Program-made: the position numbers and the translations under genes
The notes under the pieces: generated by a model
What the model was told of the DNA's origin: nothing
Database searches by the model: none
The model's input: only the letters and a program-made list of their open reading frames with translations
NCBI GenBank assembly: GCA_051530055.1
Contig: CM121342.1
Location: 3,010,797-3,074,796, forward strand
DNA: 64,000 nt
Direction of reading: 5' to 3'
DNA from: Neoechinorhynchus agilis
Lineage: Eukaryota; Animalia; Acanthocephala
Shown: piece after piece, positions 32,347 to 55,410 of the stretch
Layout: every line of letters begins with the position of its first letter
Position numbering within the stretch: the stretch's first letter is position 1

Positions 32347-33340
32347 CTAACATCTCCTCCTTACTTTTAAAAAGTCGTCATACGGTCTTTTCGGAGGTCC
32401 CCTTACTCTTTTGCCCCTTCGTAATCCAACCACCTCTTCCACCGTTTCGGTATTCTCGTCCTTGTCGGGAACCGGTGGTTGTATCGCGGATTGACCAGTA
32501 ATTTCCTCCTCTCTGGACTGCGGCATATCCTCGGCCACGTCATTCAATACTGCTGATCCTTCTTGTCCATGATCTTCCTCCTTGTTCGAAATTCCCGTCG
32601 GTCCCAAATCGTCATTCTCCTTTCGATCTCAGACCAAACTTCCATGCGTCGTGCACGATACCGGACCGTTCTGTTTTCTTATCTCTCCTCGCTTCCATTT
32701 GCTGTCAAGATCTCTCCTAAACCAGACATCCTGGCCTTCCTGAAATTTCCGCTTCTCGATTTCAGCCTGCCTCTCAGCCACGTACTCATCGATTCGCTCC
32801 TCGTCCTCGTTATCAGGCATTACCCGGTCTAGAGCTCCTCTTAATCTTCTCCCCATCATTGCCACAGCAGGTGCTTCCCCAGTAGACGAATGACGTGTGT
32901 GTTACGATAGGCGAAATGGAAATCGTTGAGATCTTCTCGTGTGATCCGCCCATCCATGGTCATAGAACGTGTTCTGGTCTTCGTACGAAGGCATGGGTAA
33001 ACGCGAGAAGCAATCCGCGTGAACATTATCGCTTCCCTTTACATATTCTACGATGTAATCGTACTCTCCCAATAGCCGAGTCCACCTTACCACTCGACTG
33101 TTCGGCATTCTCGTCAAGTCGCGATCAGCAACCAGAATATATTCTAGCGGTTTATGATCCGTCTGTATGGGGAACCGACGTCTGCATAAATACAGCGTGA
33201 ATCTCTTAACCCCAAAAATAATTGCCAACGTTTCCTTGTCAATAGTAGCGTAATTCTGCTCTGCTTTCTAGGGTTTTCTTCGACCGTCCGACAGCACATG
33301 GTATAATACAGCGCCCACTCCGATATCGCTTGCATCGCAG
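32347..33340 (-). mobile_element. Internally deleted Ty3/Gypsy LTR retrotransposon (RNase H + integrase C-terminus + PPT; the 3' LTR extends left from 32352)
   Basis: DASDIGVGAVL..NYATIDKETLAIIFGVKRF..TDHKPL..RWTRLLGEYDY..ADCFSRLP; TGEAPAVAMMGRRLR; RRGKRVRGPP. Polypurine tract aaaagtaaggaggaga (32353-32370) abuts TG. Confidence 0.9.
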
Positions 33341-33605: not shown

Positions 33606-35194
33606 TGTAACAATAATCGTTTTGAATACAGAGAATTGTAGATTCGTGCAATAGGAATATATGGGAAGAATGTGTATAATGAATTCAATATCTATAAATC
33701 TAATGCTTTAGAAATATCAAACGAAATCAAAACATTCATTGATTTCTGATAATTATTGAAAATTTGACGGGTAAGCAGGATTACCTGACCGGAAAGCTTT
33801 GGTGACTTGGATTTGAAGGGTTTTTAGAAAAGGCGAGAACCATGGAGGGTCGCGGTTCGAGATTCATATTGTTTTGCAAGGAAAGGAGGCCTTCATCGCG
33901 CTCGGATCACGACTCTGTGTAATTTCTACAAATGTAGTCGAAGGGTCGCTCACGATCCCTGGAATCTCACATGTAAGTCGATCCGCATTGTTAAGATAAC
34001 TGAGGCGGCACACTCGACCATTGCCTATGCAGTTTGTGTTTACGAATCTTAAATTTATGAGCACTTGCTTAGGCTGACACCTTTATCATGGAAAATGAAA
34101 TCACCATTATCATCGGGTATAGCTTTAAAATTCATTCCCAACTATCTCCGTTTTTCAAACCATTTTTGACTTTGTTCGTGAGCCGAACACCAACTTTCAT
34201 CTTAAGATTAAAGTTTTTGAATCGTTATTAAAGAGCTTTTAAAAGTACACAAATTTCAATCTCTGTTAACTCATTGCTGTAACAGTGATTTATTTTTCTT
34301 CAATATTCTTTTAAGCAGATTAAATCAGTCGATTAATTTCTTTACTTAAAAGTCTAAAGCGGGATTATTTTATCTTTACGGCTAACAAATCTATCGTATT
34401 GATATCAAATACAATCTGTGAAATTTTATAAATGTTGAACTTAAATCGCAAAATACGTGTTATTGTTAAGCTCTTCATCCGGTGAATGATTTTTTATTAA
34501 AGAAGATGAACCTGACGAGGTTCGAAACATCTATAATAAAAAAATCATTTACCGGATAAAGAATTAAACAATAATTCCAATCATTGTCCCCGGTACCTCA
34601 ATTATCAACATTTTGCAAATGACGTGTTCTTTGCCTTTTAAGTTTTAATAAATCTTTTTTTCTTAGAAATTTATTTTGAACATTCATTGAACTTTGACAT
34701 TTCAAACTTATTTGTTTAAGTGCTATCAGCCAAGGCGTTAATAAATTCGGCTTATAGAAATTCACTCAGGCATTTTTTCATTTAGAATATCTTAAAAACA
34801 TTTTTGGTCATAGAGTGATTTTTTCTTTGCAATTTGATTTCAGACTCATTAAAAGTTGCCGATGATAACTATGAATCCTGTGAGTTTTGATAGCTTTTAT
34901 TTCCATGCGATATTGTCAAACTCCAAATCACATTCCCCAATGATATTTGCAAACAAATAACTGACAAGCAGCGTCGAAAAAATATACATCATTGATGTGA
35001 AAAATTATATTTTTAAATTATATTTATCGTGTAGGAAATGAAAGGCTTTCCGAAACACAAATTTATTCATTCTTTGAACAGAATGCATAGATAGTTGCGA
35101 CTACGACTAAAAGCTCCTTGAATATCATGAACAATATTTTATCCTTGGTCAATCGTCTCTTAAACATGGGTAAAATCAGCGATGATTGATAATA

Positions 35195-36141
35195 TCAGCC
35201 GCCATTTATTTTCTTCAGCAGTTTTTCAAGCAGTCCCTTGTGCCGAATATTTAATTGATTCGAACGAACTTGACTTAGGATGTTGACCAAATTGTTATTC
35301 CGAATTTCACTCAGCGCTATTTCACGTTCAATCATCGCGTTGAGTATCCGCTTTAGCATCGCGTGGTTCCGAACTGTGAACTTCTCGTCCAAGATGCTTT
35401 TTAAACGATCGCAGAGTCTTTGAGGCTCAAGTTCATTTCAATTGAAGGCTTTGATTTTCTTTTTGAAATCGATTCATTGAGTGGTTTGTCCTTCAATTGT
35501 GACCCTGATTTATTTTCGATCGGAATATTGGACATTTCCATAGGTTGCCGATTATAGATTCCCACCATCTTTTTTCCGATTTTATCGATAATGTCGATTA
35601 ACGGTTCGTTTTCCCCGTTGCTGGCCATCTTATGGAGAATATTTATAAGATCGGAATCTTTGATTTCATCCACTGTCATCTCTAATTCTGAAATCTCGGA
35701 AAGGACATCGTCCACCAGTTCTAGGCTTTTGGTTGCGTATTGTGAATCCAATAAAAATTTTAGTAATTTAATCTTCTTGGTTAAACGAGAAGGCGGCATC
35801 AATTGTTTGGATTCTGAAATCTGTTGACTGTGAACGTTTTCGACATTGTGAAGTCCAGTTTCTATTCCTCCATCGCTATTGATTCTCTTCGGCGATTCTG
35901 TTCTCTTTTCCGAAATTGCGTTGGAATCCTGATCACTAGAATCAGTATCTGATATTTCGGGTTCTACTTCTTTTGGTTTATTCAATTTGGGTTTGGTCGC
36001 TGGTCTTTCTTTAGATCGCTTTTGATTGAAAGCCTCCTTGACCTTCATAGCAACTTGGATTAAGAGTTTCTTGGGTGGAGCATTATCCTTGCTGTCGAGC
36101 ATCTCTCCAAGGACATCTATCAATCCGGATTGACGAATTTC
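35195..36141 (-). pseudogene. 5'-truncated, frameshifted third copy of the TFIIS-N-repeat gene
   Basis: ORFs 35401..36123 and 35195..35392 are near-identical to the C-terminal half of the 670-aa ORF; similarity stops at 36141. Confidence 0.9.
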
Positions 36142-37543
36142 ATCACAATGCGTTCATGTAGCACAGTAGCCGGAATTCTCCTTAATTAAAAAGAAAACAG
36201 ATTCGTTGTATTCAGTTTAAAGTATTTGCGTTCTTTTCCAGCCCTTCACTACGAATTTAACGCTTCTTTAATTGTTCAAAATTTCAGCTCTTGCTACACT
36301 GTTCAATAATACGCCTGACAAAATTCTCTTCACCATAAAGTTTAATTATTAGATGCTTTGATTATATGAAAATCAACACCATTAAAGGTTAGCGATCAAA
36401 ATAAATTTCTATCACTATGCTCACAAGTCTTATTGTTCCCCAAAGCACCCTGAAGTAGTCATTGTTACAAATTAGATCAATCGACTTAGCATCCTTTGTT
36501 TCTCAGAATTGTCAGTAGAAAAATTCCGTTATTGAAAGAAGAAGCTAAACTCTGGTCGTTTTCCATTAGGGACATCTTGTGTACTAAACAACGTGGACTC
36601 CACCTTCACATACCTACAAATGTTCAGACGGCGGGATTAAAAAGAACCAAATTTTTGATAGAAATAATTTATGTAAAATGGCTGAAAAGGGTCTCCATCA
36701 AAGTTCAATTTAAACAAAAAATTTACATAGTTTATCATTAAAAGTTTTAAAAAAGGGGATCCATAGTTCTGGAGGTCTACCGCGCGCAAAGAAGCACAAT
36801 GATTCTCCTACAATACTTTTGAGTGCACGGACGAGGGTTGGGAAAGGAACCAGGAGATGCCTTGAGAGCTTGATAATAGATTTAATTTTACAGAATGTAC
36901 TCTTCAGAGAAGTATTAATAAAAATTCGGTTTTGTGTAGAAGGGAAGTCAATTCCCAGCACACGAGAGTGCTTTTTGAAACCAAAACACGAACTTAAATC
37001 ACCCTTTCGTGCAAACCAATGAACATTTCTCCGGTTTCAATTAGATTTGTCTTTTGAGTGGGAAGTCAACGCTCGTGGCTATTTTAAAGTACGAACTAAA
37101 AACTTACCATGAAGTTATCGACGAGATCTACAAGGTTCTCAATTGTGTTGAAGCAAAACCCGTCGGTGGTGGAGACGGCAAGAGCGATCTCAACCGAGCG
37201 CAAAATCCGTTTAAATTAATGGCGGAAACTATTCACTGATTTTATTTTTTGTATTGTCTCTGATTGGTTAAATTCCAGCGAAGGAGCGACGACAAATGAA
37301 ACTTGAAAATTAAATGAAAGATTCCTGGGAATAATTCTTAGCAAAAAAATCCCGATTTCCAGTATGAACGAGAACCTATTTAAAATAAGGGGAATTATAT
37401 TTTTAAATTATAGTACACCCTTTTATTTAGTACGGCAATCACGTCGATAATATCAATCTTAAAATATTTTCTTTTACCAAAAAACCAAGAAAAGCACACA
37501 AAAGTTATAAAATTTATAGCGTATGTGGAGATTGAACTATTCA

Positions 37544-37616
37544 TGTTTTTTTGCTTAAATTTAAAGGAATTTTATAAATCCGATATTTCAGTACAATCTC
37601 ATGCCTTCATCAAAGT
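37544..37616. mobile_element. Partial MITE copy
   Basis: aaatttaaaggaattttataaatccgatatttcagtacaatctc..catcaaag. Confidence 0.55.
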
Positions 37617-37777
37617 CTAAAATCCACACGTGTAGGATAATTAACTTTACACCGTACTTTGATTCATTCCCCGGTCCACTGTTTCAACCTGGCGAATAAA
37701 TAGGGCTTCCATTCAGAGCGATCCAATTTGAATTCACCTCGGGCCATCACGTGACCTTGTTGATCAAAATGGTGGCG

Positions 37778-38170
37778 TTATCGCAGAACTGAATCGATTC
37801 CCCTCCTCAGAGCGCATATTTGTCTTCTTTGGTTCTTTTTTTCCAAATTATTTGTTTGGCCTACATAGGATTTATTCCATTCGACGCAGGGAATCTCGTA
37901 CACTTTGCTTTCATGCTCATCTCGTTTCTTAACCATGGAGCTTAATGCTCGAGCTTTCTTCGTGTCGATATCTTTAGGCGCAACTTCCTTTATCAGATTG
38001 TTAATTGCACTGAATAACTCATCATCGACGAATGGTGAACCTATGGAGGTCCTTCGATTGGGCTCCCGGCACACTGCTTTCCTTCCATGAAGCCATTTTT
38101 ATCATAGAGATTGGATAGCCCTTTCCTTTGAGCATATTGCTAACTCATTATTGAGGGAATCTTGGTTGGA
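37778..38170 (-). mobile_element. Penelope-like element GIY-YIG endonuclease fragment
   Basis: VYEIPCVEWNKSYVGQTNNL matches the PLE motif VYxIPCxxCxxxYIGQT. Confidence 0.7.
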
Positions 38171-39809
38171 ATTCAATTCCCTAGTCGGCGATTGCATTAT
38201 TCTTAAATAATTAACAGCGAAAGGACATTGGCGTTATCGGTCTCAATATCACGCGGATTCTTTATTTCCTAACAGTCTCTTGCTTTATTCTTGTACCGAA
38301 TACGTTTTGGATTTTCTAACTCAATGGAATTTTCGATTTCAATTCTATAGATTTTCTGAATTCGAACACGCAAAGCGAAGGTGCACTTTTGATTTTCAGG
38401 AGTAATCGAGTGAGGTCGTGACTTTTGTTAGTATTGTCATTTTGGTTGTTGGTTCAATGACAGTAAAAGTTGGTTCATCGTAGATTGCTTTCATATAAGC
38501 AAGCAAATCTTCATAACAAACCGATTCAAATCAATGTTTCTTCAGAATACCTTTATTCTCCCAATTTACGACACTATGTGGATTATGGCAGTTCGGGCCG
38601 AATCGGCAACTATTGCTTGCCACAAAATAAAAACAAGCATGAACCTTCTGGCACTCTTTATCCATCACAAAACCGTCACACAATCTAAGCATACGACCAG
38701 TCTCGAAATCCGTTATAAATAAGATCTTTTTGAGGGTTCGGATTTTTACTTTATCGGCACCATGGAACTTTGCTGCCTGGAGATTGTGTTCCGACTTGAG
38801 ATCGTGGTCAAATGCACATTTTCGGCCTTTTGTAGAGCTTCCTTTGAGAGTTGTTAAAAAGTATTTACATCCATGAATATATTTGCAATCCTCATTGCGT
38901 GATGGTTAAAACCTACATCTCATGATTTTTGTATTCAAAGCCAGAATGAATTTTGTGTTGTTTTCGTCCGACAATAAACTTAGAAATCGGTGAGTTAAAC
39001 TGAGTTTGTACATATCGAGGAGCATTGTTGAAGGATCAACGTCCGTAGGAGTGAGATTCGCGACACTAATTTTAGTTTGCATTGTTTCCACCAATTTGTC
39101 AATAAAGGCATCATTAAAGGCTTCAGGACTCTCCATTATAAGTTGAAATTGTTAGTTTTTTCAACGCCATCGAACCAAATCTTCTGATATTTCTCTATTT
39201 CCTAACAGTCTCTTGCGTGATTCCTGTACCGAATACGTTTTGGATTTTCCAACTCAATGGAATTTACTTTAGATTTCAATTCACTAGTTGGCTTTTTCTT
39301 GATTCCTGCTCACTTGATTGCTATGGAACAATAGCGCCATCGAACCAAATCTTCTGATATTTCTCTATTTCCTAACAGTCTCTTGCGTGATTCTTGTACC
39401 GAATACGTGCGGGATTTTCTGACTTCATCAAGTTTTTTATTGCAAAGCTCAACATTACAGCTCGCCGCCGGTGGAGGTCGTGAGTTCCTAGCGGTTTCTT
39501 CAACATCGCTAATTGTCGTTCTTTGTCTTTGGCTTACAACCCTAACTTCAATGATATAAAATCGTAGCTTTAACAATCCTTTGTAAAGTCTGTTAGTTTC
39601 TTATTGATATCCTTCGACTTAATCAAATTTCGAACTGGTATTATCTGCCGAATTCATCCTCTAAGCAAAAAATCGGTTTGAAGTACTCGACCTTGTACCC
39701 ATCGTTCCTGGGCCAAACGAGCACGGCGAATGGCACTCTTGTTGTTTGGTTGAGTTCATTTTGTATGCTTCGGTTAATATTTTATTTACATCAGCTTGTC
39801 GTTAATGAA

Positions 39810-40690
39810 CTGCAAGCCAAAATAAACTTTCTCTCATAATCCAATAATAGAGTACAGTGATTGCGACTAGAAGATAAACTGCCAAATAAAGATTCCGCCA
39901 TCCTCTAACAAAATAAACGACTAAATCCAAAATCAACATTCCTATACCCCAAATGAAATTAGCCATTATACACGGGTGCCTCGGTATTCTGCTGCAAAAA
40001 CTTCAATCCTGAGAATATAACAAGAAAGGTGACCAATCTGCCAGCAAATTCCAAATAAAAAAACGGAATACTATAAAAAATATCAAGATGATTCCGATCA
40101 ATAACAAGATATAATGATTTTAACTGAACGGATGCATCCGATTTAGATGGTGTTTGAAAGTGCACAGCCGATTCCGAATATGATATTGATCCAAGCCCCG
40201 AGAAGAGCAATTGGATTCTTACAAAAGTTGTCGCCAAACATTGACAAAACGGCTGCCCCAATTACTGATCCTATGAAAAAGGCTGGCTGTGGAATATCCT
40301 TTAAGAATTTCCGATCGCAATATAGATCAAAAGCGAATACCAGCGATCTGTCGTCGGGAAGCGGGTGGATGTAGCCGTTGGACAGGGTATTGTTTTATTT
40401 GACAGTGAATAATAATTCTCAAACTTTCCATCTGCATTAATTGAAATCGCGTCGCTCATCGGCCATCAAATTAATTTAAAAATTTCTATTCTACTTATAT
40501 TTTTGAAAATAGTAACGTTAAAGCTTTCAATATTTTATTTTTTGAAGCTCTATCATTCAAAGCCTCGTGATCATTTTCTTCAATTCTTTTACTTTTCGCC
40601 CCAATTCTCGTTCTTATACAACTCAAATCCTCCATTAGTAAAGGACATTTATGTTCCGGCATTTGAAATAAATCTAACGAATGAATTTCC
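39810..40690 (-). pseudogene. SLC22-like (MFS organic ion transporter) pseudogene fragment, left arm
   Basis: PEHKC; SLVFAFDLYCDRKFL..AFFIGSVIGAAVLSMFGDNFCKNP; YFVRGWRNLYL..YWIMRES. Contains stops and frameshifts. Confidence 0.72.
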
Positions 40691-41489
40691 CTTCGCTGTT
40701 TTGTGATTACATTGAGTGCCATTTAAACATTTATGGCATCATAGACGTATCTTCTTATATTCTTATAATCTGCCACCTTTTCAGCTATTCTCAAAACCAC
40801 ACCATGGAAAATCCCCTGATTTTCATGATCGAAGTAGATTCCAACAAGTTCATCGGCGACTTCGCTGTATGTTGTATTGCTTGGTGCTGATCATGCGTAG
40901 TCCGAATGTTTTTCTCGTGGTTTTGCAAGGTTCATTGCCTGATTCTGTTCTCGAGTAGAAATGACTGCTGATTCGGTTGAAGATGAAATGATTGAACGTT
41001 GTATTGAACGTGGCTTTTGATCGAATCGATGAGTACGAGTCTATTTCACTATTGTGGCTCATTTGATCACTGAACGATGGTGAACAGTTCATGTTGTGGT
41101 ATGGCGGTACGTTTTCCATTGTGCTTAAATACTTGGATTTGAAGATTCGAATCAGTGAAAGGAAATGCTGAGATCGTGAAAATAAAGATGGCTGAGTTAG
41201 GTGAGGATGCCTTTCAATAGTAAAAGAATGAGAACTTACATTGAAATCATTAAAGCATTTCTGATTCGCAGGATAAAGGCTACTTTGTATTAATGCTGAT
41301 TTTTTGACATTTTTAAATTTTTATCCTTTTTTGCTTAGCGAAAAAATGTTAAAATTAGTCCATAGACAACATTTAGTTGTTAATTGAGAAGCGATTTCCG
41401 TATCGATAACATTTTGTTAAACATACTCATTTTTTTGAGACATCAAATCATTCACACAATCGCTCTGGATCCCTGAGATGCCGTTTTGG

Positions 41490-41730
41490 TGTAACGGTCG
41501 AAAGGACGGATGAAGCGTTCCCTCTCGTTTTCAGAGCAGATTTTTGTAGGAGGAATGCTCCTGATCTCGGATCGCCAGTGATTCGTCTCAATCTCTTAGA
41601 CAATTCCTAGACCAGGTCCTGGGCCGCAGTGAGCTCACACTTTCCAGCATTAAGCTTAACGCTTAATCTCGCATTCTCCCTAATCTTTCCTGATCTCTCG
41701 GTTCGGATATCAGCCTTATGGACGTCAAGA
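41490..41730. mobile_element. Possible solo-LTR-like GC-richer block upstream of the TFIIS-N-repeat gene (mirrored at ~46400-46640)
   Basis: Starts TGTAAC and is abruptly richer in GC than its flanks. No TSD or second LTR identified. Confidence 0.25.
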
Positions 41731-41962
41731 AGGAAGTAAAATGATAATCAGACTCAAGATATAGACAAATAACTACCATACAAATGAAGATTCTTACTAC
41801 GAACAATAAATCATTTTAGTAGGCTGCTATTATTTTTGTCAGCTCTTCTTCAGTACTAATTTTGATTACTAATTCATCAAAACAATGAAAATAAAGCTTC
41901 CATTTCACGTTTGACAATATCTCAGATATTTGTACATTTGAAAGACGCCAATTGAGGTCGAA

Positions 41963-43976
41963 TTGACGTCGTTCAATTTCGGTGCAGTAAAACTAAAACC
42001 ATACTTTAGAATTGTCTTTAAGGTGCAAGAGAACGAATCAAAAATGACGATCAAGCGAACATCAAATGCTAAGGATAAATCACTCGCTCAAATATGTGAT
42101 GAATTGAGAGATAATCTCGACGGTGATTCTTGTACAATCAACCAATCTTTGGCCAAACGAAACCTGCGAGAGTTGTTAACGCGATCGATTACAGCCGAAG
42201 AAATCTTAAACTTTGGGATGCTTGAGATGGTAGACGAAATGGCCGTAGACAAAGATTGCAAAAGTACAAGTTGGTTCCTAAGTAAATTAAAGAGCAAATT
42301 CAAAAAGATTGTCGGTGAAAAATATATTCCAAGGATGAAAACGACGAAGACATTGGTCAGTACGACCTCAACTCTAAAACGAGCAAATAAAGATGAAGTA
42401 ATGGCGAAAAAGAAGATGACAGATTCAAGCGATAAAGGACGAATCCATTATGAAATGGCAACGTCCAAATCATTAAATATGCTGGTTAAAAAAGTTAAAA
42501 TTGGATTGGACTCACAGTTTAAGGTTACAAACAAGAGCTTAGTAACCAGTGTCTTTTCTGAGATTCTCAAACAAGAAATGACCATCTCTCAGATTGGTAA
42601 GTCCGGCCTAATAAAGATTCTCCACCAAATGAATCAAAACAAAGAAAACGGAGAACTTGACCATTTGATTAAAGAAGTTGCAGCAAAAATTAAAGTAGTG
42701 CTTGGCATGGAGAAAGGTAAAAATGCCGATGATAAATCTCATACGATGTCCGGTATCCACTCAAAGTTTGATGTTGAGATTGAAGAGCAGTGTCCGATAG
42801 AAACGAAATCTAAATCCAGTTTTGAAGACGCGAGCTGTAAAGAAATTTCAAGGAAGAGACTGTCATCAACCATTCAAGGCGAAGAGAAAACAAAAATTCA
42901 GCGGACAAATTCAACACATCTCCGTCAAAGAATCTTGATGACTATGAACTCTGAGCACAAAATTGTGAATTCTGATTTATTAAGGAGCATCGTTGATGAA
43001 ATTCTGAAGGGCGAAGTTAGCCTGAGTGAAATTCGTCAATCCGGATTGATAGATGTCCTTGGAGAGATGCTCGACAACGAGGATAATGCTCCACTCAAGA
43101 AACTCTTAATCCAAGTTGCTATGAAGGTCAAGGAGGCTTTCAATCAAAAGCGATCTAAAGAAAGACCAGCGACCAAATCCAAATTGAATAAACCAAAAGA
43201 AGTAGAACCCGAAATATCAAATACTGATTCTAGTGATCGGGGTTCTAACGCAATTTCGGAAAAGAGAACAGAATCGACGAAGAGAATCAATAGCGATGGA
43301 GGAATAGAAACGGGACTTCACAATGTCGAAAACGTTCACAGTCAACAGATTTCAGAATCCAAACAATTGATGCCGCCTTCTTGTTTAACCAAGAAGATTA
43401 AATTACTAAAATTTTTATTGGATTCACAATACGCAACCAAAAGCCTAGAACTGGTGGACGATGTCCTTTCCGAGATTTCAGAATTAGAGATGACTGTGGA
43501 TGAAATCAAAGATTCCGATCTTATAAATATTCTCCATAAGATGGCCAGCAACGGGGAAAACGAACCGTTAATCGACATTATCGATAAAATCGGAAAAAAA
43601 GATGGTGGGAATCTATAATCGGCAACCTACGGAAATGTCCAATATTCCGATCGAAAATAAATCAGGGTCACAATTGAAGGACAAACCACTCAATGAATCG
43701 ATTTCAAAAAGAAAATCAAAGCCTTCAATTGAAATGAACTTGAGCATCAAGGAACTCTGCGATCGTTTAAAAAGCATCTTGGACGAGAAGTTCACAGTTC
43801 GGAACCACGCGATGCTAAAGCGGATACTCAGCGCGATGATTAAACGTGAAATAGCGCTGAGTGAAATTCGGAATAACAATTTGGTCAACATCCTAAGTCA
43901 AGTTCGTTCGAATCAATTAAATATTCGGCACAAGGGACTGCTTGAAAAATTGTTGAAGAAAATAAATGGCGGCTGA
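41963..43976 (+). pseudogene. TFIIS-N-repeat gene, left-arm copy, split by a 1-nt insertion in an A-run at ~43594-43600
   Basis: The 551-aa and 124-aa ORFs together equal the 670-aa mirrored ORF; A7 here vs A6 in the other two copies. Could be a homopolymer error. Confidence 0.8.
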
Positions 43977-44154
43977 TATTATCAATCATCACTGATTTTA
44001 CCCCATGTTTAAGAGACGATTGACCAAGGATAAAATATTGTTCATGATATTCAAGGAGCTTTTAGCTAAAAGCTCCTTGAATATCATGAACAATATTTTA
44101 TCCTTGGTCAATCGTCTCTTAAACATGGGGTAAAATCAGTGATGATTGATAATA

Positions 44155-46167
44155 TCAGCCGCCATTTATTTTCTTCAACAATTTTTCAAGCAGTCCCTTG
44201 TGCCGAATATTTAATTGATTCGAACGAACTTGACTTAGGATGTTGACCAAATTGTTATTCCGAATTTCACTCAGCGCTATTTCACGTTTAATCATCGCGC
44301 TGAGTATCCGCTTTAGCATCGCGTGGTTCCGAACTGTGAACTTCTCGTCCAAGATGCTTTTTAAACGATCGCAGAGTTCCTTGATGCTCAAGTTCATTTC
44401 AATTGAAGGCTTTGATTTTCTTTTTGAAATCGATTCATTGAGTGGTTTGTCCTTCAATTGTGACCCTGATTTATTTTCGATCGGAATATTGGACATTTCC
44501 GTAGGTTGCCGATTATAGATTCCCACCATCTTTTTTCCGATTTTATCGATAATGTCGATTAACGGTTCGTTTTCCCCGTTGCTGGCCATCTTATGGAGAA
44601 TATTTATAAGATCGGAATCTTTGATTTCATCCACAGTCATCTCTAATTCTGAAATCTCGGAAAGGACATCGTCCACCAGTTCTAGGCTTTTGGTTGCGTA
44701 TTGTGAATCCAATAAAAATTTTAGTAATTTAATCTTCTTGGTTAAACGAGAAGGCGGCATCAATTGTTTGGATTCTGAAATCTGTTGACTGTGAACGTTT
44801 TCGAGATTGTGAAGTCCCGTTTCTATTCCTCCATCGCTATTGATTCTCTTCGTCGATTCTGTTCTCTTTTCCGAAATTGCGTTAGAACCCCGATCACTAG
44901 AATCAGTATTTGATATTTCGGGTTCTACTTCTTTTGGTTTATTCAATTTGGATTTGGTCGCTGGTCTTTCTTTAGATCGCTTTTGATTGAAAGCCTCCTT
45001 GACCTTCATAGCAACTTGGATTAAGAGTTTCTTGAGTGGAGCATTATCCTCGTTGTCGAGCATCTCTCCAAGGACATCTATCAATCCGGATTGACGAATT
45101 TCACTCAGGCTAACTTCGCCCTTCAGAATTTCATCAACGATGCTCCTTAATAAATCAGAATTCACAATTTTGTGCTCAGAGTTCATAGTCATCAAGATTC
45201 TTTGACGGAGATGTGTTGAATTTGTCCGCTGAATTTTTGTTTTCTCTTCGCCTTGAATGGTTGATGACAGTCTCTTCCTTGAAATTTCTTTACAGCTCGC
45301 GTCTTCAAAACTGGATTTAGATTTCGTTTCTATCGGACACTGCTCTTCAATCTCAACATCAAACTTTGAGTGGATACCGGACATCGTATGAGATTTATCA
45401 TCGGCATTTTTACCTTTCTCCATGCCAAGCACTACTTTAATTTTTGCTGCAACTTCTTTAATCAAATGGTCAAGTTCTCCGTTTTCTTTGTTTTGATTCA
45501 TTTGGTGGAGAATCTTTATTAGGCCGGACTTACCAATCTGAGAGATGGTCATTTCTTGTTTGAGAATCTCAGAAAAGACACTGGTTACTAAGCTCTTGTT
45601 TGTAACCTTAAACTGTGAGTCCAATCCAATTTTAACTTTTTTAACCAGCATATTTAATGATTTGGACGTTGCCATTTCATAATGGATTCGTCCTTTATCG
45701 CTTGAATCTGTCATCTTCTTTTTCGCCATTACTTCATCTTTATTTGCTCGTTTTAGAGTTGAGGTCGTACTGACCAATGTCTTCGTCGTTTTCATCCTTG
45801 GAATATATTTTTCACCGACAATCTTTTTGAATTTGCTCTTTAATTTACTTAGGAACCAACTTGTACTTTTGCAATCTTTGTCTACGGCCATTTCGTCTAC
45901 CATCTCAAGCATCCCAAAGTTTAAGATTTCTTCGGCTGTAATCGATCGCGTTAACAACTCTCGCAGGTTTCGTTTGGCCAAAGATTGGTTGATTGTACAA
46001 GAATCACCGTCGAGATTATCTCTCAATTCATCACATATTTGAGCGAGTGATTTATCCTTAGCATTTGATGTTCGCTTGATCGCCATTTTTGATTCGTTCT
46101 CTTGCACTTTAAAGACAATTCTAAAGTATGGTTTTAGTTTTACTGCACCGAAATTGAACGACGTCAA
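44155..46167 (-). CDS. Intronless Lys-rich protein with five TFIIS-N-like helical repeats (first ATG gives ~643 aa)
   Basis: Uninterrupted 670-codon ORF with five copies of a pattern such as SEILKQEMTISQIGKSGLIKILHQM..ELDHLIKEVAAKIK, separated by S/K/E-rich linkers. Confidence 0.8.
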   Translation of the reverse strand: MTSFNFGAVKLKPYFRIVFKVQENESKMAIKRTSNAKDKSLAQICDELRDNLDGDSCTINQSLAKRNLRELLTRSITAEEILNFGMLEMVDEMAVDKDCKSTSWFLSKLKSKFKKIVGEKYIPRMKTTKTLVSTTSTLKRANKDEVMAKKKMTDSSDKGRIHYEMATSKSLNMLVKKVKIGLDSQFKVTNKSLVTSVFSEILKQEMTISQIGKSGLIKILHQMNQNKENGELDHLIKEVAAKIKVVLGMEKGKNADDKSHTMSGIHSKFDVEIEEQCPIETKSKSSFEDASCKEISRKRLSSTIQGEEKTKIQRTNSTHLRQRILMTMNSEHKIVNSDLLRSIVDEILKGEVSLSEIRQSGLIDVLGEMLDNEDNAPLKKLLIQVAMKVKEAFNQKRSKERPATKSKLNKPKEVEPEISNTDSSDRGSNAISEKRTESTKRINSDGGIETGLHNLENVHSQQISESKQLMPPSRLTKKIKLLKFLLDSQYATKSLELVDDVLSEISELEMTVDEIKDSDLINILHKMASNGENEPLIDIIDKIGKKMVGIYNRQPTEMSNIPIENKSGSQLKDKPLNESISKRKSKPSIEMNLSIKELCDRLKSILDEKFTVRNHAMLKRILSAMIKREIALSEIRNNNLVNILSQVRSNQLNIRHKGLLEKLLKKINGG

Positions 46168-47429
46168 TTCGACCTCAATTGGCGTCTTTCAAATGTACAA
46201 ATATCTGAGATATTGTCAAACGTGAAATGGAAGCTTTATTTTCATTGTTTTGATGAATTAGTAATCAAAATTAGTACTGAAGAAGAGCTGACAAAAATAA
46301 TAGCAGCCTACTAAAATGATTTATTGTTCGTAGTAAGAATCTTCATTTGTATGGTAGTTATTTGTCTATATCTTGAGTCTGATTATCATTTTACTTCCTT
46401 CTTGACGTCCATAAGGCTGATATCCGAACCGAGAGATCAGGAAAGATTAGGGAGAATGCGAGATTAAGCGTTAAGCTTAATGCTGGAAAGTGTGAGCTCA
46501 CTGCGGCCCAGGACCTGGTCTAGGAATTGTCTAAGAGATTGAGACGAATCACTGGCGATCCGAGATCAGGAGCATTCCTCCTACAAAAATCTGCTCTGAA
46601 AACGAGAGGGAACGCTTCATAAGTCCTTTCGACCGTTACACCAAAACGGCATCTCAGGGATCCAGAGCGATTGTGTGAATGATTTGATGTCTCAAAAAAA
46701 TGAGTATGTTTAACAAAATGTTATCGATACGGAAATCGCTTCTCAATTAACAATTAAATGTTGTCTATGGACTAATTTTAACATTTTTTCGCTAAGCAAA
46801 AAAGGATAAAAATTTAAAAATGTCAAAAAATCAGCATTAATACAAAGTAGCCTTTATCCTGCGAATCAGAAATGCTTTAATGATTTCAATGTAAGTTTTC
46901 ATTCTTTTACTATTGAGAGACATCTTCACCAAACTCAGCCATCTTTATTTTCACGATCTCAACATTTCCTCTTACTGATTCGAATCTTCAAATCCAAGTA
47001 TTTAAGCACAATGGAAAACGTACCGCCATAATCGTTCAATGATCAAATGAACCACAATCCTGAAGTGGACTCGTACTCATCGATTCGATCAAAAGCCACG
47101 TTCAATACAACGTTCAATCATTTCATCTTCAACCGAATCAGCAGTCATTTCTACTCGAGAACAGAATCAGGCAATGAACCTTGCAAAACCACGAGAAAAA
47201 CATTCGGACTACGCATGATCAGCACCAAGCAATACAACATACAGCGAAGTCGCCGATGAACTTGTTGGAATCTACTTCGATCATGAAAATCAGGGGATTT
47301 TCCATGGTGTGGTTTTGAGAATAGCTGAAAAGGTGGCAGATTATAAGAATATAAGAAGATACGTCTATGATGCCATAAATGTTTAAATGGCACTCAATGT
47401 AATCACAAAACAGCGAAAGGAAATTCATT

Positions 47430-48300
47430 CGTTAGATTTATATCAAATGCCGGAACATAAATGTCCTTTACTAATGGAGGATTTGAGTTGTATAAGAACG
47501 AGAATTGGGGCGAAAAGTAAAAGAATTGAAGAAAATGATCACGAGGCTTTGAATGATAGAGCTTCAAAAAATAAAATATTGAAAGCTTTAACGTTACTAT
47601 TTTCAAAAATATAAGTAGAATAGAAATTTTTAAATTAATTTGATGGCCGATGAGCGACGCGATTTCAATTAATGCAGATGGAAAGTTTGAGAATTATTAT
47701 TCACTGTCAAATAAAACAATACCCTGTCCAACGGCTACATCCACCCGCTTCCCGACGACAGATCGCTGGTATTCGCTTTTGATCTATATTGCGATCGGAA
47801 ATTCTTAAAGGATATTCCACAGCCAGCCTTTTTCATAGGATCAGTAATTGGGGCAGCCGTTTTGTCAATGTTTGGCGACAACTTTTGTAAGAATCCAATT
47901 GCTCTTCTCGGGGCTTGGATCAATATCATATTCGGAATCGGCTGTGCACTTTCAAACACCATCTAAATCGGATGCATCCGTTCAGTTAAAATCATTATAT
48001 CTTGTTATTGATCGGAATCATCTTGATATTTTTTATAGTATTCCGTTTTTTTATTTGGAATTTGCTGGCAGATTGGTCACCTTTCTTGTTATATTCTCAG
48101 GATTGAAGTTTTTGCAGCAGAATACCGAGGCACCCGTGTATAATGGCTAATTTCATTTGGGGTATAGGAATGTTGATTTTGGATTTAGTCGTTTATTTTG
48201 TTAGAGGATGGCGGAATCTTTATTTGGCAGTTTATCTTCTAGTCGCAATCACTGTACTCTATTATTGGATTATGAGAGAAAGTTTATTTTGGCTTGCAGT
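47430..48300 (+). pseudogene. SLC22-like pseudogene fragment, right arm
   Basis: Mirror of 39810-40690. Confidence 0.72.
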
Positions 48301-49713
48301 TCATTAACGACAAGCTGATGTAAATAAAATATTAACCGAAGCATACAAAATGAACTCAACCAAACAACAAGAGTGCCATTCGCCGTGCTCGTTTGGCCCA
48401 GGAACGATGGGTACAAGGTCGAGTACTTCAAACCGATTTTTTGCTTAGAGGATGAATTCGGCAGATAATACCAGTTCGAAATTTGATTAAGTCGAAGGAT
48501 ATCAATAAGAAACTAACAGACTTTACAAAGGATTGTTAAAGCTACGATTTTATATCATTGAAGTTAGGGTTGTAAGCCAAAGACAAAGAACGACAATTAG
48601 CGATGTTGAAGAAACCGCTAGGAACTCACGACCTCCACCGGCGGCGAGCTGGGATGTTGAGCTTTGCAATAAAAAACTTGATGAAGTCAGAAAATCCCGC
48701 ACGTATTCGGTACAAGAGTCACGCAAGAGACTGTTAGGAAATAGAGAAATATCAGAAGATTTGGTTCGATGGTGCTATTGTTCCATAGCAATCAAGTGAG
48801 CAGGAATCAAGAAAAAGCCAACTAGTGAATTGAAATCTAAAGTAAATTCCATTGAGTTGGAAAATCCAAAACGTATTCGGTACAGGAATCACGCAAGAGA
48901 CTGTTAGGAAATAGAGAAATATCAGAAGATTTGGTTCGATGGCGTTGAAAAAACTAACAATTTCAACTTATAATGGAGAGTCCTGAAGCCTTTAATGATG
49001 CCTTTATTGATAAAATTGGTGGAAACAATGCAAACTAAAATTAGTGTCGCGAATCTCACTCCTACGGACGTTGATCCTTCAACAATGCTCCTCGATATGT
49101 ACAAACTCAGTTTAACTCACCGATTTCTAAGTTTATTGTCGGACGAAACAACACAAAATTCATTCTGGCTTTGAATACAAAAATCATGAGATGTAGGTTT
49201 TAACCATCACGCAATGAGGATTGCAAATATATTCATGGATGTAAATACTTTTTAACAACTCTCAAAGGAAGCTCTACAAAAGGCCGAAAATGTGCATTTG
49301 ACCACGATCTCAAGTCGGAACACAATCTCCAGGCAGCAAAGTTCCATGGTGCCGATAAAGTAAAAATCCGAACCCTCAAAAAGATCTTATTTATAACGGA
49401 TTTCGAGACTGGTCGTATGCTTAGATTGTGTGACGGTTTTGTGATGGATAAAGAGTGCCAGAAGGTTCATGCTTGTTTTTATTTTGTGGCAAGCAATAGT
49501 TGCCGATTCGGCCCGAACTGCCATAGTCGCGGTCGTCCACCCGAACAGCGGCCTATATTCGGCGAGGCCCTTCTACAAAATGCGTCCTTTTTAAGACAAA
49601 AAGAGAAGATGGAACTGGTCAGGAGGATGAATTATTGGTTGCAAGTATTATAAACAAACGAATAACATAACTTCCATGTGTGACAATTAACCGCTCTCAC
49701 GATCGCTAAAGTT

Positions 49714-50260
49714 ATGGTCAGTGCGTCCACCGACGAATGGGCTCAAATGAACCTCAGCCGGTGGAGATGTTCGTCCAATATCCATTCAGAACTCACTGGT
49801 TTCAATCTACGAACGGGCACTAATTGCATCGACCACGGATGCCACGGTTTTTTACCCCATAAATCCGTTCAGACGGCTTTGTCTGAAATTATCACCAATT
49901 TTAATTCGAATCAGGAGTCAATGAACATTTTAATTTCCTTCGATATCTCTAAGGCTTTTGATAGCATTGATATCGCTTTTATAATAAAGATCCTTTGTTA
50001 TTTTCAGTCTAAGCAATTTTTTTATCAAGATGACACATCTCTCAAGATTTATCATCAAACTAAAGGAGTTCCGCAAGGGTCCCCTCTCTCACTCATCCTC
50101 TTCTAATTTGCTTCCCAATTTCTGCTTAAGAACTGCCGAGCCTGCAATGAATTAACCCTATATGCAGACGATTTCAATGCGGTGATCAAGGAAGCGAACT
50201 ACCTAGCCGCTATAAGGAAACTCTCAGATTTACTGTCATGTCTTAATTCTATTCTCCTTC
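49714..50260 (+). mobile_element. Degenerate LINE (CR1/L2/Jockey-type) reverse transcriptase fragment
   Basis: HGFLPHKSVQTAL, FDISKAFD, GVPQGSPLS and, after a stop, LYADD. EAFNDAFI at ~48973 may be the upstream linker. Confidence 0.85.
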
Positions 50261-51321
50261 AGACCCTTTAAAGACGAAATTTATTTTAAAATCTTAGTCG
50301 GTTTTTGATAAACAACGTGTTCGCGAATTTTATAAACAATTTTTTAATCTGACCTCGTCGTCAGTTTCTAATAAGATCACAATCTTGGGAAACACCCTAC
50401 GACCTCCGCAAATTCAAAAAACTTAAGTGTCGCTAAGCTTAAATGCAGAAGATCTTTTAAACTTGAACTCTGCTCTCATGATACCAGAAGCATTTGGAAC
50501 TCTTGAGCAATCTCGGGCCTAGTTTTTTACTCGTGAGGAATACCCCCGAATAACGATTAAAGTACATTATCACTTTCCTAGAGGCTCTGGGCAAACTCCC
50601 TTACTCCTGGAAACAAGCGCTTAAATGGACAGCGATGATATAACTTTATTACTATCGAATTATAATTATTCCTACACATAAATTATGTCGGTTAATCATC
50701 CAATGTCTTCCTTCGAATAAATCTTGAGCCTCGTGTTAGGATAATTCATCAATTCGTTCACACAGCACCGAAACTTGCAGTTGAAGATTGGCAATCTCTT
50801 TTTCCACATTTGAGTCAAAAATAGAGCTTCCTAGAAGATGTAACAGGCGTAGAGTGATCTCGCAGGATTCAGTTCAATGTAAATTTTCGTAACTAAGTAT
50901 TCAAGCTATTGCAATTATAAATTTTATTAGCAACGTTAGACGTCTAAAATCCAATTCGTTAGGACGCAACGTAGTGACCAAAGTTTAAGTTTTGATGAAA
51001 TCCGATTTAAATCGGTTATAGAATTTGCTAGTTAGAAATCTCGTAGACTACTGGGATTTGGAATTAACTTTATTTCTCGTGAAAATACTGAAGCCAATCC
51101 CCTGCACATATCTTTTGCTTTTTTAATTAAAACAGCGCTTTAGAAAGGCCAACTAATTCTTTGGGTTCACTCGAATACGGACGTTTGCTGATAAATACCG
51201 TGATTTGCCGGAAAGCAAATCGAGTTGTTTACAAAACATTTCAATGTTACGCTCTAATTATTTGTTTATGTTCCGCCAATTTTCCCGATTGATGGGTTCT
51301 TAGACTCACAATCTCTCGCCG

Positions 51322-52068
<747 letters not shown>

Positions 52069-52459
52069 ACGTAATACAGTAATCGATAGGCGTGATAGTT
52101 TCATAATTTTTTCTAAAATAAAGCATAGTCGCAATTTGAGTTTTTATGGCGGTACCATGTTGAAACATTTATTTCGCGGACGACTCTCGGATCCTCGAAT
52201 CAAGTAAGCATTGCACATGAGTATCTCGGCTCATCAAGTAAGATAAAAATTGAAATCGGTAAGCGTTAACTAGGAAAAATGACACAGACAAAAATCAAAG
52301 GTTAATATATCCTCCGCCAATTTCCTGTTCATGACTGTTGTGCCGATGACTAGGCGAATCGTGCTCGCTACTTTATCGTCGTCAAAGTTAAAAAGTGCAA
52401 CCCTTTTCGTTGTTTTTAAGAGAACTGTATCGACTTTAATGACACTTACGACTAATCGA

Positions 52460-53144
52460 TCACTTTTTGTCTCGTTTATGATGTCGGATCTTTTTTGATT
52501 TCCTTATTGTTCCAAACAGTTTAGGCTTTCGCTTTAAAACTCGTTTGTCATTTTTACTCAGTGCATCAATTGCTCTCAATGCATCCTTCGTACTTCTCAT
52601 TTGAACAATTCTTCTAATATGTTTAAACAACAGAACTTCCCAACAACCAAATCACGACTAATGGCACCTTTTCGCATGGGTAACCCGTCCTTCTTCATTT
52701 TTGCGAGTAGTTCCATGTTGGACATGTCACCGGACGACGGTCCTTGCTCATCACTAGAGTCCTTATCGGCCTGGCCTCGTTGTTGGCACTTTATGCATCG
52801 GACATCCCTAATTTGTATGCCAAACGGTTGGTCTTTTACTTTATCATTGGGTTTGGCCCATTGCTCACGTGGAGCTCCTCGCCACCGTCTTTTCCACCAT
52901 CGTCGGCTGTCATACCAATCGGAGGATTGTACATGAATGAAAGTCCCAAACGACCTTTCTCATCACCCAGCAACCACCGATTCGCAAACATCTCCTTTTC
53001 CTTGTCATGCTGCTCTTTTAAAAGTTGCTGCTGTAGCCGTTCAGCTTCGGCCTTTTGCTCAGCCATCCAGAGGCGTTTCATGTTCCCCAAATTGCTGGGA
53101 TGAAACCACTTCTTGGACATGTAATTCTCGTAGCCTTTCCCCAT
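52460..53144 (-). CDS. CIR1: Corepressor interacting with RBPJ 1 / CWC25-like N-terminal region, compact and possibly decaying
   Basis: MGKGYENYMSKKWFHPSNLGNMKRLWMAEQK..LLGDEK..GLSFMYNPP; GAPREQWAK..KDQPFGIQIRDVRCIKC; DALSKNDKRVLKRK. Needs two frame changes. Confidence 0.82.
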
Positions 53145-53529
53145 GTCGAATCGAAGCTCTTAATAAAAAATCAATTAGAAATTCTTTAAATCTTGGTTTC
53201 AAAAAGAGCTCGTTACAGCACACAAAAACAGCATGTCCATTTAAGAGCTGGCTTTCAAGTTCGATCGAAATCGGGGCCTTCGAGCAAGATTGGCCCGAGT
53301 TTGAGGCGCTACTTGAGTCTGATAGGGGAAAATTTTAAAGAAAGTCTGATTTTAAAGAATTTTTCGACTTCTAAATGGATATTTGGAATCTTTTCTTGGG
53401 ATTCGTTGATCAATTTACGAAAAAATAGCACCCTAATATCGCTTATTTCGATATGTGAGTGCATGTTATGTTTTTGGAGGAGAAAGGATGTCTTTGCGAG
53501 GGACAACATTTTAGAATCAAAGATCGGAA

Positions 53530-54575
53530 ATGCCAAGTTCGACGGAATTGATCACTATATTGCTTTTTTCTCTTCTATTTGTTTATCTTCTCTTCAAAGT
53601 CTTCTCAAATGTGAGGTTGCTCAGTTCGTGCGGTCGAACATGCTTAATAATTGGACCGAGTGGCAGTGGAAAGACAAAGCTTTTTCTCGTGCTGAATGAT
53701 CAGACAGCAAGATCTTCGGTGACTTCACTGACCGCGAATGTCTCGGAGTATTCAGAATTGGTTCAATTAGTCGATCTACCTTCTCATCCTCGTTTGTGGA
53801 ACAAAAGTCGAACCTCGATTAAGTCTTATGACATTGGAAAAATTATTATGGTAATAAAACCCTTCGAAGATTCAGCAGGACTTTCCAAACATGAACATTT
53901 CCTACATGCTGCTGAGTTATTTCGGGATACTCTTTCGGAAATAAGCCACCGCCAAGATCCACTAGGACATGGATATTGCCATTCGTAGTAAAATCTTCAT
54001 CGTTTTAGAAAAAGAACACATATTCGGTCTGAGAAAAATCGAAGGCGAAAGTTACGATCCCATTGGATTTAGGGATCATCGTTTTTTAATTCGAATGTAT
54101 ACTTTGACTTTGGTTAACGAACTCTGCCAAAAACAACTCACATATTTTTAGGTTATAATATTGAGGTCGGTCCTCCAGTTCCGACAGGGAAGTCAAATTT
54201 TATCGTTATCAGATTTAAAAAATGAGTACTTTTAATTGGTAATCACTGATAACGATTTTTGTCAGGTTTCGAGGGCCGACTGCAAAATAATAACATATCT
54301 AACCGCCGCCTACTTTTTAAGAATGTGCAAAAATTCATGTCGCAAAATTGCCTGCTCTCGTAGTGTGGAATGATTGGCGCGAGGACGCCAAACAATTATT
54401 CGAAAACGGAAGGAGTGAATTAAACAAGCAAATTGTTGATACTGTGAGTAAATGCGAGGAAATACGTTCGAGTAGTTCAGTGGAGCAGTACGTGGAATCG
54501 TTTAATTGGCTAAAAGGCGATTTAAGTAAAGATGAATTCGTAAAAGAGGTCGGTGATTGGATTAAACAAAGCTAA
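53530..54575 (+). CDS. SRPRB: Signal recognition particle receptor beta subunit (splice path unresolved)
   Basis: N-terminal [40 protein letters not shown]; last exon [18 protein letters not shown]. Confidence 0.7.
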
Positions 54576-54596
54576 TTTTTGAGTTGAGTTTTTGGA

Positions 54597-54717
54597 CTTT
54601 ACGTTCTCATCTTCCCATTATAACGGAGGAATATTCGATAATGGAGAAGATATTGGAGAATCAAGTGGTTTTAGTATGCGGAGAAACGGGATCCGGCAAG
54701 ACTACTCAACTTCCTAG
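54597..54717 (+). pseudogene. DEAH-box helicase Walker A fragment (DHX37-like)
   Basis: [35 protein letters not shown]; no start codon; ends at the following insertion. Confidence 0.8.
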
Positions 54718-54719
54718 GA

Positions 54720-55410
54720 TGGGAGGGGTTTATGGTTTTTTCTAGCAGTACTGGGTGCTAGAGAGGAGGTGGGGGATTTAGATTAGGCCGAGGAGGAAGG
54801 GGGTTCGGTTTTAATGGTGTAGCAGAGTGAGACTTAGAATGCAAGGACGAGGGAAGAGGGGTATGCGGGATGATGAGAACGGAATTAAGGGAGAAGATTG
54901 TTGAGGAGTAGTCGAATTTGAGTGTGGAGAGGAGTTTTGGAGGGCGTCGACAGCAAAGGGTGGGTGGACAGTATTTAAAGGGTGAAGCGAGGGAGAAGAG
55001 GAGGTTTGGGGTGGGGAAACTGAAGATGGAAGGGGTTGGGGATTAGGGGTTTGGGAGTGGTTAGTATTGGGAAGGGGGGGGACCGGAGAACACGGTTTGG
55101 GCCAGGCGGCAGTACAGAAACCGCAAATGAATTTCCGGCCTGCTGCCCAAGTACTTGAGACGCATATTTGAGTTGTAAAAGGGCAGTCGTCCATGTTGCA
55201 GGGAACGAGCTTGGTGGTTGGGCGCTTTGGCCTCGGCATCTTTGATTGTAAGTTTTAAATAACCGAGGAATTCAATTGCTTGTACGACGATGAATAAGAC
55301 GATGACGTAACGCATTGTGCAATGCGTTACTAAGAAAAGATTTTTGTTAGGAACTTGTTTGTAAGTTTTTAAATATGTGAGTTCGTCTGATATGTGATGT
55401 GAGTTCGTCT
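54720..55410 (-). mobile_element. Probable LINE 5' region/ORF1 with partial PHD-like Cys cluster and Pro/Ser-rich tail
   Basis: PCNMDDC..QICV..RKFICGFC then a P/S-rich stretch; strong G/A strand skew; 22-23-nt tandem duplication atgtgagttcgtctgatatgtg at its left (5') border, ~55375-55418. Confidence 0.5.

Follow-up and report, generated by a model that had tools for sequence, protein, structure and literature searches.

Is the uninterrupted palindrome in the assembled genome of the acanthocephalan Neoechinorhynchus agilis a part of the worm's DNA, or was it created when the sequence was put together? The palindrome lies in a 64,000-nucleotide (nt) stretch of CM121342.1 (positions 3,010,797–3,074,796 of assembly GCA_051530055.1), which is called the window here and whose numbering is used unless otherwise stated. 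Its arms occupied positions 38584–44065 and 44066–49525 and met with a spacer of 0 nt, as an earlier note made from the sequence alone had described. The same note had proposed that this was a candidate locus for a hairpin RNA. Judging from the other assembled copies of the region, the junction at 44065/44066 is, on balance, probably an assembly join between two genuine, near-identical copies, and would then not be present in worm DNA.

The two arms and the fold point

An inverted repeat of 5.5 kb in perfect register is far beyond chance. When one arm was aligned globally with the reverse complement of the other, 28 substitutions and four indels were found, and the identity between the arms by BLAST was 99.05%. 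Three of the indels were of 1 nt and the fourth, of 21 nt, was present only in the left arm (41079–41099), where an indel of about 20–30 nt near 41060–41100 had been noticed before. The innermost 471 nt were identical in both arms, and there was no convincing gradient of divergence away from the centre once a block of 190 nt was set aside. The homology of the arms stopped at 38581 and 49528, and different, ordinary genes lay beyond it on both sides. The fold point is the only element of the palindrome whose reality is doubtful. Here, the arm sequence is called module U, the segment before the left arm X, a third and truncated copy of the arm gene T, and the two modules beyond the right arm R and F (Table 1).

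No independent sequence crossing the junction was found among the assembled contigs (locus L001, the two copies on unplaced contig 25, the third copy, and unplaced contig 63). Locus L001 (CM121341.1, ~8.12 Mb) was colinear with the right flank and the right arm from 52118 down to exactly 44066, with 98% identity, and beyond 44066 it carried a native continuation that matched the third copy. Unplaced contig 25 (JBMGUZ010000025.1) contained two divergently oriented copies, and both of them read through the fold-point position. The third copy also ran past this position, into a native 3′ flank with an AATAAA that the arms lack, as the earlier note had stated. In L001, in both copies of contig 25 and in the third copy, the continuation at the fold point was ...GGAGCTTTTAG TCGT...AATAAA, and the native sequence expected past the fold point in ordinary X-U and R-U copies is ...TTTTAGTCGT.... 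The k-mer that spans the fold-point junction is CAAGGAGCTTTTAGCTAAAAGCTCCTTG, and its counterpart in the native context is GGAGCTTTTAGTCGT.

The order of modules in unplaced contig 63 (JBMGUZ010000063.1) was F, ~870 nt of helicase, T, X, and U. Its T-X-U part had the structure of the left half of the palindrome, with 97–98.5% identity (98.5% for the match in T-X-U order). The contig ended at ...GGAGCTTTTA, 1 nt short of the centre, and did not cross it. Its final 137 nt were 100% identical to a contig-25 copy, which continued natively. The two bases on either side of the join were polymorphic among the copies, and a 27-nt indel polymorphism began 4 nt later. The fold point is the place where the copies start to differ, and it is a natural stop for a k-mer graph or for read tiling.

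The genes in the arms were convergent, and their stop codons (43974–43976 and 44155–44157) were separated by 178 nt, in agreement with the tail-to-tail reading frames described earlier. The frameshift of the left copy came from a run of seven A at 43594–43600, which faced six T at 44531–44536 in the right arm. It split the left frame into 41963–43618 and 43602–43976, and the annotation bridged it with a 34-nt "intron". The reading frame in the right arm was unbroken on the minus strand (44155–46167), and the exact product of this 670-aa window frame was not on record. Three codon differences between the arms that the earlier note had listed (T/A, V/L, and C/R) were real and lay at 42047, 43325, and 43382. 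The third copy shared 97.7–97.8% identity with the arms over 35107–36145, and its protein was encoded in the window only.

From the outer edge to the centre, module U comprised a CCCH zinc-finger gene fragment, a 170-nt tandem repeat, fragments resembling an SLC22-type transporter (a resemblance judged by eye only), ~1 kb of upstream sequence, and the family gene. The mirror of the CCCH fragment (49204–49650, plus strand) extended beyond the edge of the right arm. Since this fragment is cut at the X-to-U junction yet continuous at the R-to-U junction, R-to-U is the older junction and X-to-U is derived. Module U is a segmental duplication of ordinary DNA and no transposon. Terminal repeats, target-site duplications, and a boundary common to all copies were looked for as signs of a transposon and none was found, and the extent shared among the copies varied from 3–3.7 kb in loci L004 and L005 to at least 8 kb in L001. 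The idea that the arms are transposon copies was ruled out, because they have no common ends and are a mosaic of ordinary gene fragments and the family gene.

Origin of the junction

The data and the pipeline behind this assembly are capable of producing a fold-back join. The genome was assembled from Nanopore R9.4 reads of a pool of ~50 worms and from NovaSeq reads, with almost no HiFi data, by MaSuRCA hybrid mega-reads and Flye (contig N50 of 482 kb), followed by purge_dups, instaGRAAL Hi-C scaffolding with 10-N joins, manual curation, and TGS-GapCloser (PMC12690905). The final assembly contained 0.9 N per 100 kb, which indicated that most joins had been closed with Nanopore reads, and the genome paper describes neither a fold-back filter nor an amplification step (PMC12690905). 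Fold-back artefact reads account for 0.55–0.6% of Nanopore genomic reads, or 1–4% in other work; they often have no sequence between their halves and can recur at one site (PMC12870357). By a rough reckoning, a dataset of such size would include several fold-back reads for any 64-kb stretch. These reads are normally outvoted. They gain influence only at places that ordinary reads fail to extend past, such as a scaffold gap or the edge of an unresolved repeat, and the stop of contig 63 suggests that the centre is such a place.

Two genuine, nearly identical 5.5-kb copies of U lie in this gene cluster, one entered from X and the other from R, and the manner in which they were joined can be inferred. 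Assembly of the blocks on both sides would have ended at one position in the 3′ flank of U, at which divergence among the many copies and the pooled haplotypes begins. The blocks would then have been set tail to tail and the gap closed; such a gap is exactly what a Nanopore fold-back read with zero spacer would bridge. Under an assembly join, there would be no cruciform and no obligatory hairpin transcript, and both genes would retain the native 3′ flank seen in other copies.

Two known systems resemble such a join. Nanopore fold-back artefact joins give a near-perfect palindrome with nothing between its halves, as here; they come from the same type of data (a Nanopore ligation library), can recur at one site, and are not caught by the usual read filters (Heinz, Meyerson & Li 2026, PMC12870357). 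Unlike a single-molecule fold-back, the N. agilis arms have private variants, and therefore the artefact would be confined to the join between two real copies. The palindromes of the first Adineta vaga assembly were later judged to be scaffolding artefacts (PMC8494291). That species belongs to the same phylum (Rotifera/Syndermata), its case also involved near-identical palindromic scaffold sequence and polymorphic input DNA, and the author group and the toolset overlapped with those of the N. agilis assembly. However, the outer flanks X-T and R-F in N. agilis are not allelic to each other, and a head-to-head placement of two haplotypes of one locus, as in A. vaga, was rejected in its simple form since these flanks have no homology. 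No restriction site that could reflect the DpnII/HinfI bins of the Hi-C scaffolder was visible by eye around the centre, where only AGCT was seen. The earlier note had itself allowed for an artefact. An assembly product is now favoured, but its suggested cause, DNA amplified by multiple displacement amplification, does not apply to a genome whose paper describes no amplification; the sources to consider are fold-back reads of Nanopore sequencing and Hi-C scaffolding together with gap closing.

Several points weigh against an assembly join. Both arms are real, separate copies. Private variants in each, together with variants shared with other copies that the two arms divide between them, show that a single molecule was not read twice. 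The private variants of the left arm were at 40667, in the 41042–41232 block, and at 41376, 42022, and 43594; those of the right arm, listed in left-arm coordinates, were at 38961, 39094–39098, 41508–41509, and 43325; and the polymorphisms shared with other copies and split between the arms were at 39336, 39391, 40691, 42047, and 43382. In the 41042–41232 block, the right arm, L001, contig 63, and contig 25 agreed against the left arm. Along all of U, the arms were each other's closest relatives, with 0–4 differences per 500 nt compared with 5–22 between the arms and contig 63, L001, and contig 25 (2–22 for the left arm and contig 63). The left arm is not closest to contig 63, even though both have the X-to-U junction. 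Arm-to-arm gene conversion in a real palindrome would give this pattern of likeness; artefactual copying would likewise leave the arms closer to each other than to the copies with which they share flanks. A contig stop at the centre may also be how an assembler behaves at a true palindrome. Inverted pairs of the family are real elsewhere (convergent on CM121343.1 and divergent on contig 25), and no second spacerless palindrome was found in the ~250 kb of the assembly examined, so the artefact is not pervasive. In addition, the exact software step that would set two blocks against each other with no filler cannot be shown.

A further reading would have only one copy of U here, with the whole left arm derived from the right-arm molecule, as the complement strand in one fold-back Nanopore read or as a chimera of whole-genome amplification. 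The zero spacer, the identical inner 471 nt with a CCCC variant private to both arms, and the 1-nt homopolymer frameshift of the left copy would fit such an origin. However, private substitutions occurred in both arms, a clean 21-nt insertion lay inside the 190-nt diverged block of the left arm, the left arm met X at the same nucleotide in the independent contig 63 with a full U behind X, and no amplification step is described in the genome paper. This origin is highly improbable and was rejected on the private variants, the X-U junction of contig 63, and the lack of any reported amplification, in line with the earlier view that the palindrome is not a simple read fold-back. It is possible, though doubtful, that the palindrome is a real and young inverted duplication in the germline, in which a break or a template switch 89 nt past the stop codon gave a fold-back copy of U. 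The route might have been, for example, the replication of a hairpin-capped end, with the outer breakpoint inside the CCCH fragment at X-to-U; arm-to-arm gene conversion would then hold the arms ~99.7% alike, and contig 63 would be the other haplotype, with its assembly broken at the centre. The arms are sister sequences throughout, each with private variants and with one diverged block that resembles a conversion tract. The X-to-U junction interrupts a reading frame and is common to two contigs, the second contig is discontinuous at the same nucleotide, and an older inverted pair of the same family, with a spacer, exists. The segment u11098–12138 (L001 coordinates) is present three times in the order forward-inverted-forward, like a duplication-inverted triplication-duplication. 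However, the third copy of this segment was 2.2% diverged, compared with 0.3% between the arms there, and was therefore not a product of the same recent event as the arms; 2.4 kb of unrelated X lay at the second junction. Palindromes of 11 kb with no spacer at all are also the least stable kind, as is established for bacteria, yeast, and mouse transgenes. Moreover, no contig crossed the centre, contig 63 stopped 1 nt short of it instead of a few bases past it, contig 63 and the window conflicted in their adjacency to T so that at least one was wrong, and assembly junk was found within 11 kb. A breakage-fusion-bridge intermediate, which the earlier note had also mentioned, is unlikely since both flanks run on into ordinary genes, and such a product was rejected because there was neither a chromosome-scale mirror nor distal loss and the arm homology ended at 38581 and 49528.

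The ampliconic palindromes of the human X and Y chromosomes are reportedly large inverted repeats with multi-copy, lineage-specific genes. Like them and like the inverted pair on CM121343.1, the N. agilis palindrome has a young multi-copy family in arms that are more than 97% identical, and its arms are more alike than allelic or paralogous copies, which is a signature of gene conversion. The human palindromes and the CM121343.1 pair have a unique spacer, whereas the palindrome on CM121342.1 has none, and the genes of the CM121343.1 pair keep ~4 kb of native 3′ flank, unlike those of the palindrome. If real, the palindrome on CM121342.1 would rank among the very few spacerless ones of multi-kilobase length that an animal germline tolerates, and would be a natural test of how a hairpin RNA is born from a young gene family. 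That the palindrome is real and is also a hairpin-RNA gene, with a read-through double-stranded RNA diced into small RNAs that would silence the family in trans, is very unlikely on the present sequence comparison. The poly(A) signal that the earlier note had regarded as lost was lost in part: the downstream AATAAA of the native copies was missing and the next AATAAA on the read-through strand was at 44711, 646 nt beyond the centre, but an AATAAA was retained at 43961 in each arm, within the coding region and 13 nt ahead of the stop codon. A 600-nt read-through RNA would fold perfectly (−547 kcal/mol, z = −65), as that of any palindrome would, and so this adds nothing. Paralogues at 91–98% identity could be targeted, and N. 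agilis has PIWI proteins and piRNAs as well as public small-RNA libraries (PMC12256650). However, a hairpin requires that the junction be real, no Rfam match was found in 34000–56000, and the intact right copy and a family dN/dS of about 0.4 fit a gene better than a dedicated hairpin locus. Drosophila simulans would be the parallel for this reading, since its hairpin-RNA suppressors act against young gene families. The Drosophila hairpin-RNA loci are inverted duplications of young gene families, which they silence (PMC10292708, PMC10317233). Like them, the N. agilis locus is an inverted duplication of a rapidly expanding, lineage-restricted family, and its read-through transcript would fold into one long, perfect hairpin able to target other loci in trans; unlike them, it still has an intact gene in one arm, on which purifying selection acts, the locus is known from sequence alone, and its junction is a candidate. 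We give very little credence to the full chain, that is, a germline 11-kb spacerless palindrome whose convergent genes, deprived of their normal terminator, would form a kilobase-scale hairpin and yield small RNAs that restrain a family of at least 23 members. If true, it would be a case outside the arthropods, of independent origin, in which a hairpin-RNA suppressor arose through the inverted duplication of the very family that it controls.

If the junction is instead a join made in assembly, ACOME3_005277, ACOME3_005278, and ~20 kb of CM121342.1 near 3.05 Mb would be mis-ordered, and the poly-C run and the broken helicase fragment described below would also deserve flagging. Users of the first chromosome-scale acanthocephalan genome should then build no small-RNA or structural-variation stories on this locus.

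The gene family and its other copies

The genes in the arms belong to a family with at least 15 close annotated copies and 8 more distant ones, which made at least 23 members on three chromosomes, all of them in N. agilis. No relatives outside N. agilis were found among 1.84 billion representative proteins. The paralogues were 91–98% identical, and dS within the family was up to 0.11. The dN/dS of 0.3–0.5 suggested that the family evolves as protein-coding genes under relaxed constraint.

A full-length model of the protein contained five helical bundles with disordered linkers between them. Pfam TFIIS_N/Med26 gave no match to the whole protein at E up to 0.1 or to single repeats at E up to 10. 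A profile built from the five internal repeats matched the TFIIS N-terminal domain (TND) of MED26 among PDB structures (E = 0.0016). The model of a single repeat, with a predicted local distance difference test (pLDDT) score of 93.6, superposed on MED26 (PDB 6zv3) with template modelling (TM) scores of 0.84/0.78 at 1.9 Å, and the first 27 Foldseek matches of this repeat in the PDB were all TND, LW, IBD, or IWS1 domains, the best of them being MED26. Each of the five repeats is thus predicted to adopt the five-helix bundle of the TFIIS N-terminal fold. The TFIIS-N repeats named in the earlier note were therefore right at the level of the fold, although Pfam was silent.

The predicted five-helix bundle is common to the TND proteins (TFIIS, MED26, Elongin A, PPP1R10/PNUTS, IWS1, and LEDGF). 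Known TND proteins have one such domain together with other modules, whereas the N. agilis protein has five domains and disordered linkers and nothing else. In addition, unlike the known proteins, this family is not seen by the Pfam model and has no relatives outside the species. As a guess, it could serve as a decoy or a scaffold for the motifs of elongation factors. Whichever way the junction falls, two results are solid. One is a family of proteins, specific to this worm and recently amplified, that are made up of five TFIIS-N-terminal-like domains; the other is an older inverted pair, the second one seen for this family.

This older pair lay on CM121343.1 (L010 and L005, positions 2,897,018–2,930,896 of that sequence) and had 7.1-kb arms with 97.65% identity and a spacer of 1868 nt. 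Its genes were convergent and ~4 kb from the spacer, and a further inverted match of 1 kb at 99% identity was found outside the arms. Over 2431 nt including the family gene, L004 (CM121341.1, ~1.89 Mb) was 99.96% identical to L005/L010 (CM121343.1, ~2.9 Mb), and another 355 nt were 100% identical. This near-identity reflects either a very recent inter-chromosomal duplication or misplaced sequence.

Several other copies had features of their own. Contig 25 (L008 and L006, 35 kb) was composed of R, F, a full antisense copy, R again, and a sense copy, followed by sequence 99.98% identical to CM121341.1; it is either an unpurged haplotig or a chimera. In L001, direct repeats of 475 nt (3536–4010 and 20088–20562 in its own coordinates), 98.7% identical, flanked 16 kb that included R, U, and a partial family copy, and the homology to the window began exactly at the inner edge of the left repeat. 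Family copies on two unplaced contigs (L003, 10001–11931; L008, 8951–10872) contained frameshifts that were bridged by short annotated introns. These are either pseudogenes or the result of uncorrected indel errors in low-coverage contigs.

Sequence around the palindrome

Table 1. Features of the palindrome and its surroundings, in window coordinates.
Feature	Position	Strand	Remarks
Third copy (T), 5′-truncated	34213–36145	−	Last 233 codons and native 3′ flank including AATAAA
Segment X	36146–38580		Between T and the left arm; weak GIY-YIG-like fragment at 37778–38074
CCCH zinc-finger gene fragment	38582–38905	−	zf-CCCH_PARP12, E = 8e-8; truncated at the outer edge of the left arm
Left arm (module U)	38584–44065	+ (sense strand)	Preceded by segment X; same X-to-U junction in unplaced contig 63
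Tandem repeat, 170 nt	39165–39435		Within the arm; mirror at 48690–48944
Diverged block private to the left arm	41042–41232	+	14 substitutions and the 21-nt insertion 41079–41099; upstream of the gene
Left gene copy, ACOME3_005277 (KAL7670340.1)	42044–43976	+	Frameshifted by an extra A in the run 43594–43600
Fold point	44065–44066		...GGAGCTTTTAG / CTAAAAGCTCC...; CM121342.1 positions 3,054,861/3,054,862
Right arm (module U)	44066–49525	− (sense strand)	Runs on into module R; colinear with L001
Right gene copy, ACOME3_005278 (KAL7670341.1, 682 aa)	44155–46412	−	Intact; residues 7–682 correspond to 46185–44158 at 100%
Module R	49529–52118	+	Shared with L001 and contig 25; decayed reverse-transcriptase fragment at 49684–50103
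Poly-C run, perfect, 257 nt	51698–51954	+	No C-run at that site in any paralogue
Module F	52137–54711	+	Gene fragments: Cir_N, SRPRB, start of DEAH helicase
G-rich, C-poor stretch (~400 nt)	54712–55110	+	45% G, 8% C; starts exactly at the cut of the helicase frame

The poly-C run lay 2.2 kb outside the right arm, at a site where the paralogues (L001 and two places on contig 25) read ...GACTACTGCGATC.... It yielded spurious poly-proline and poly-glycine reading frames, and it is probably assembly junk from two-colour Illumina no-signal G calls that entered the k-mer-based hybrid assembly. A different sequence came after module F in each of the window, contig 25, and contig 63, though its last 207 nt were 100% identical in all three. 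In the window, the DEAH-helicase frame was cut at 54711, just past a GETGSGKT motif, and contig 63 carried this frame on. The G-rich stretch that follows the cut is either junk or a real low-complexity exon on the minus strand.

Contig 63 joined F, helicase, and T, and the window joined other sequence to T. These joins conflict, and therefore the window and contig 63 cannot both be correctly assembled at this place. With the cut helicase frame at one end and the unsupported centre at the other, the block 44066–54711 is thus bounded by two suspect junctions, and a third anomaly lies inside it. Most of the contradictory adjacencies are accounted for by the order U(−)-R-F-helicase-T-X-U(+), which contig 63 suggests. 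Even with this order, the centre would not arise without a fold-back read or an abutment, and the order is folded into the favoured explanation, the assembly join.

The annotated SRPRB gene model in module F (window 52836–54711; also L008 and L009) removes the P-loop, and an identical 131-aa product was annotated on three contigs. In segment X, a Penelope-like match of the GIY-YIG fragment was below threshold. Just left of the third copy, a fragment of a retrotransposon reverse-transcriptase RNase H (Pfam RT_RNaseH, E = 6e-9) was found at 32902–33228, in a GC-rich (46%) stretch. Two satellite arrays were also present in the window: 18 copies of a 109-nt unit at 27500–29495, with 92% identity, and 11 copies of a 155-nt unit at 60258–62012, with 98% identity.

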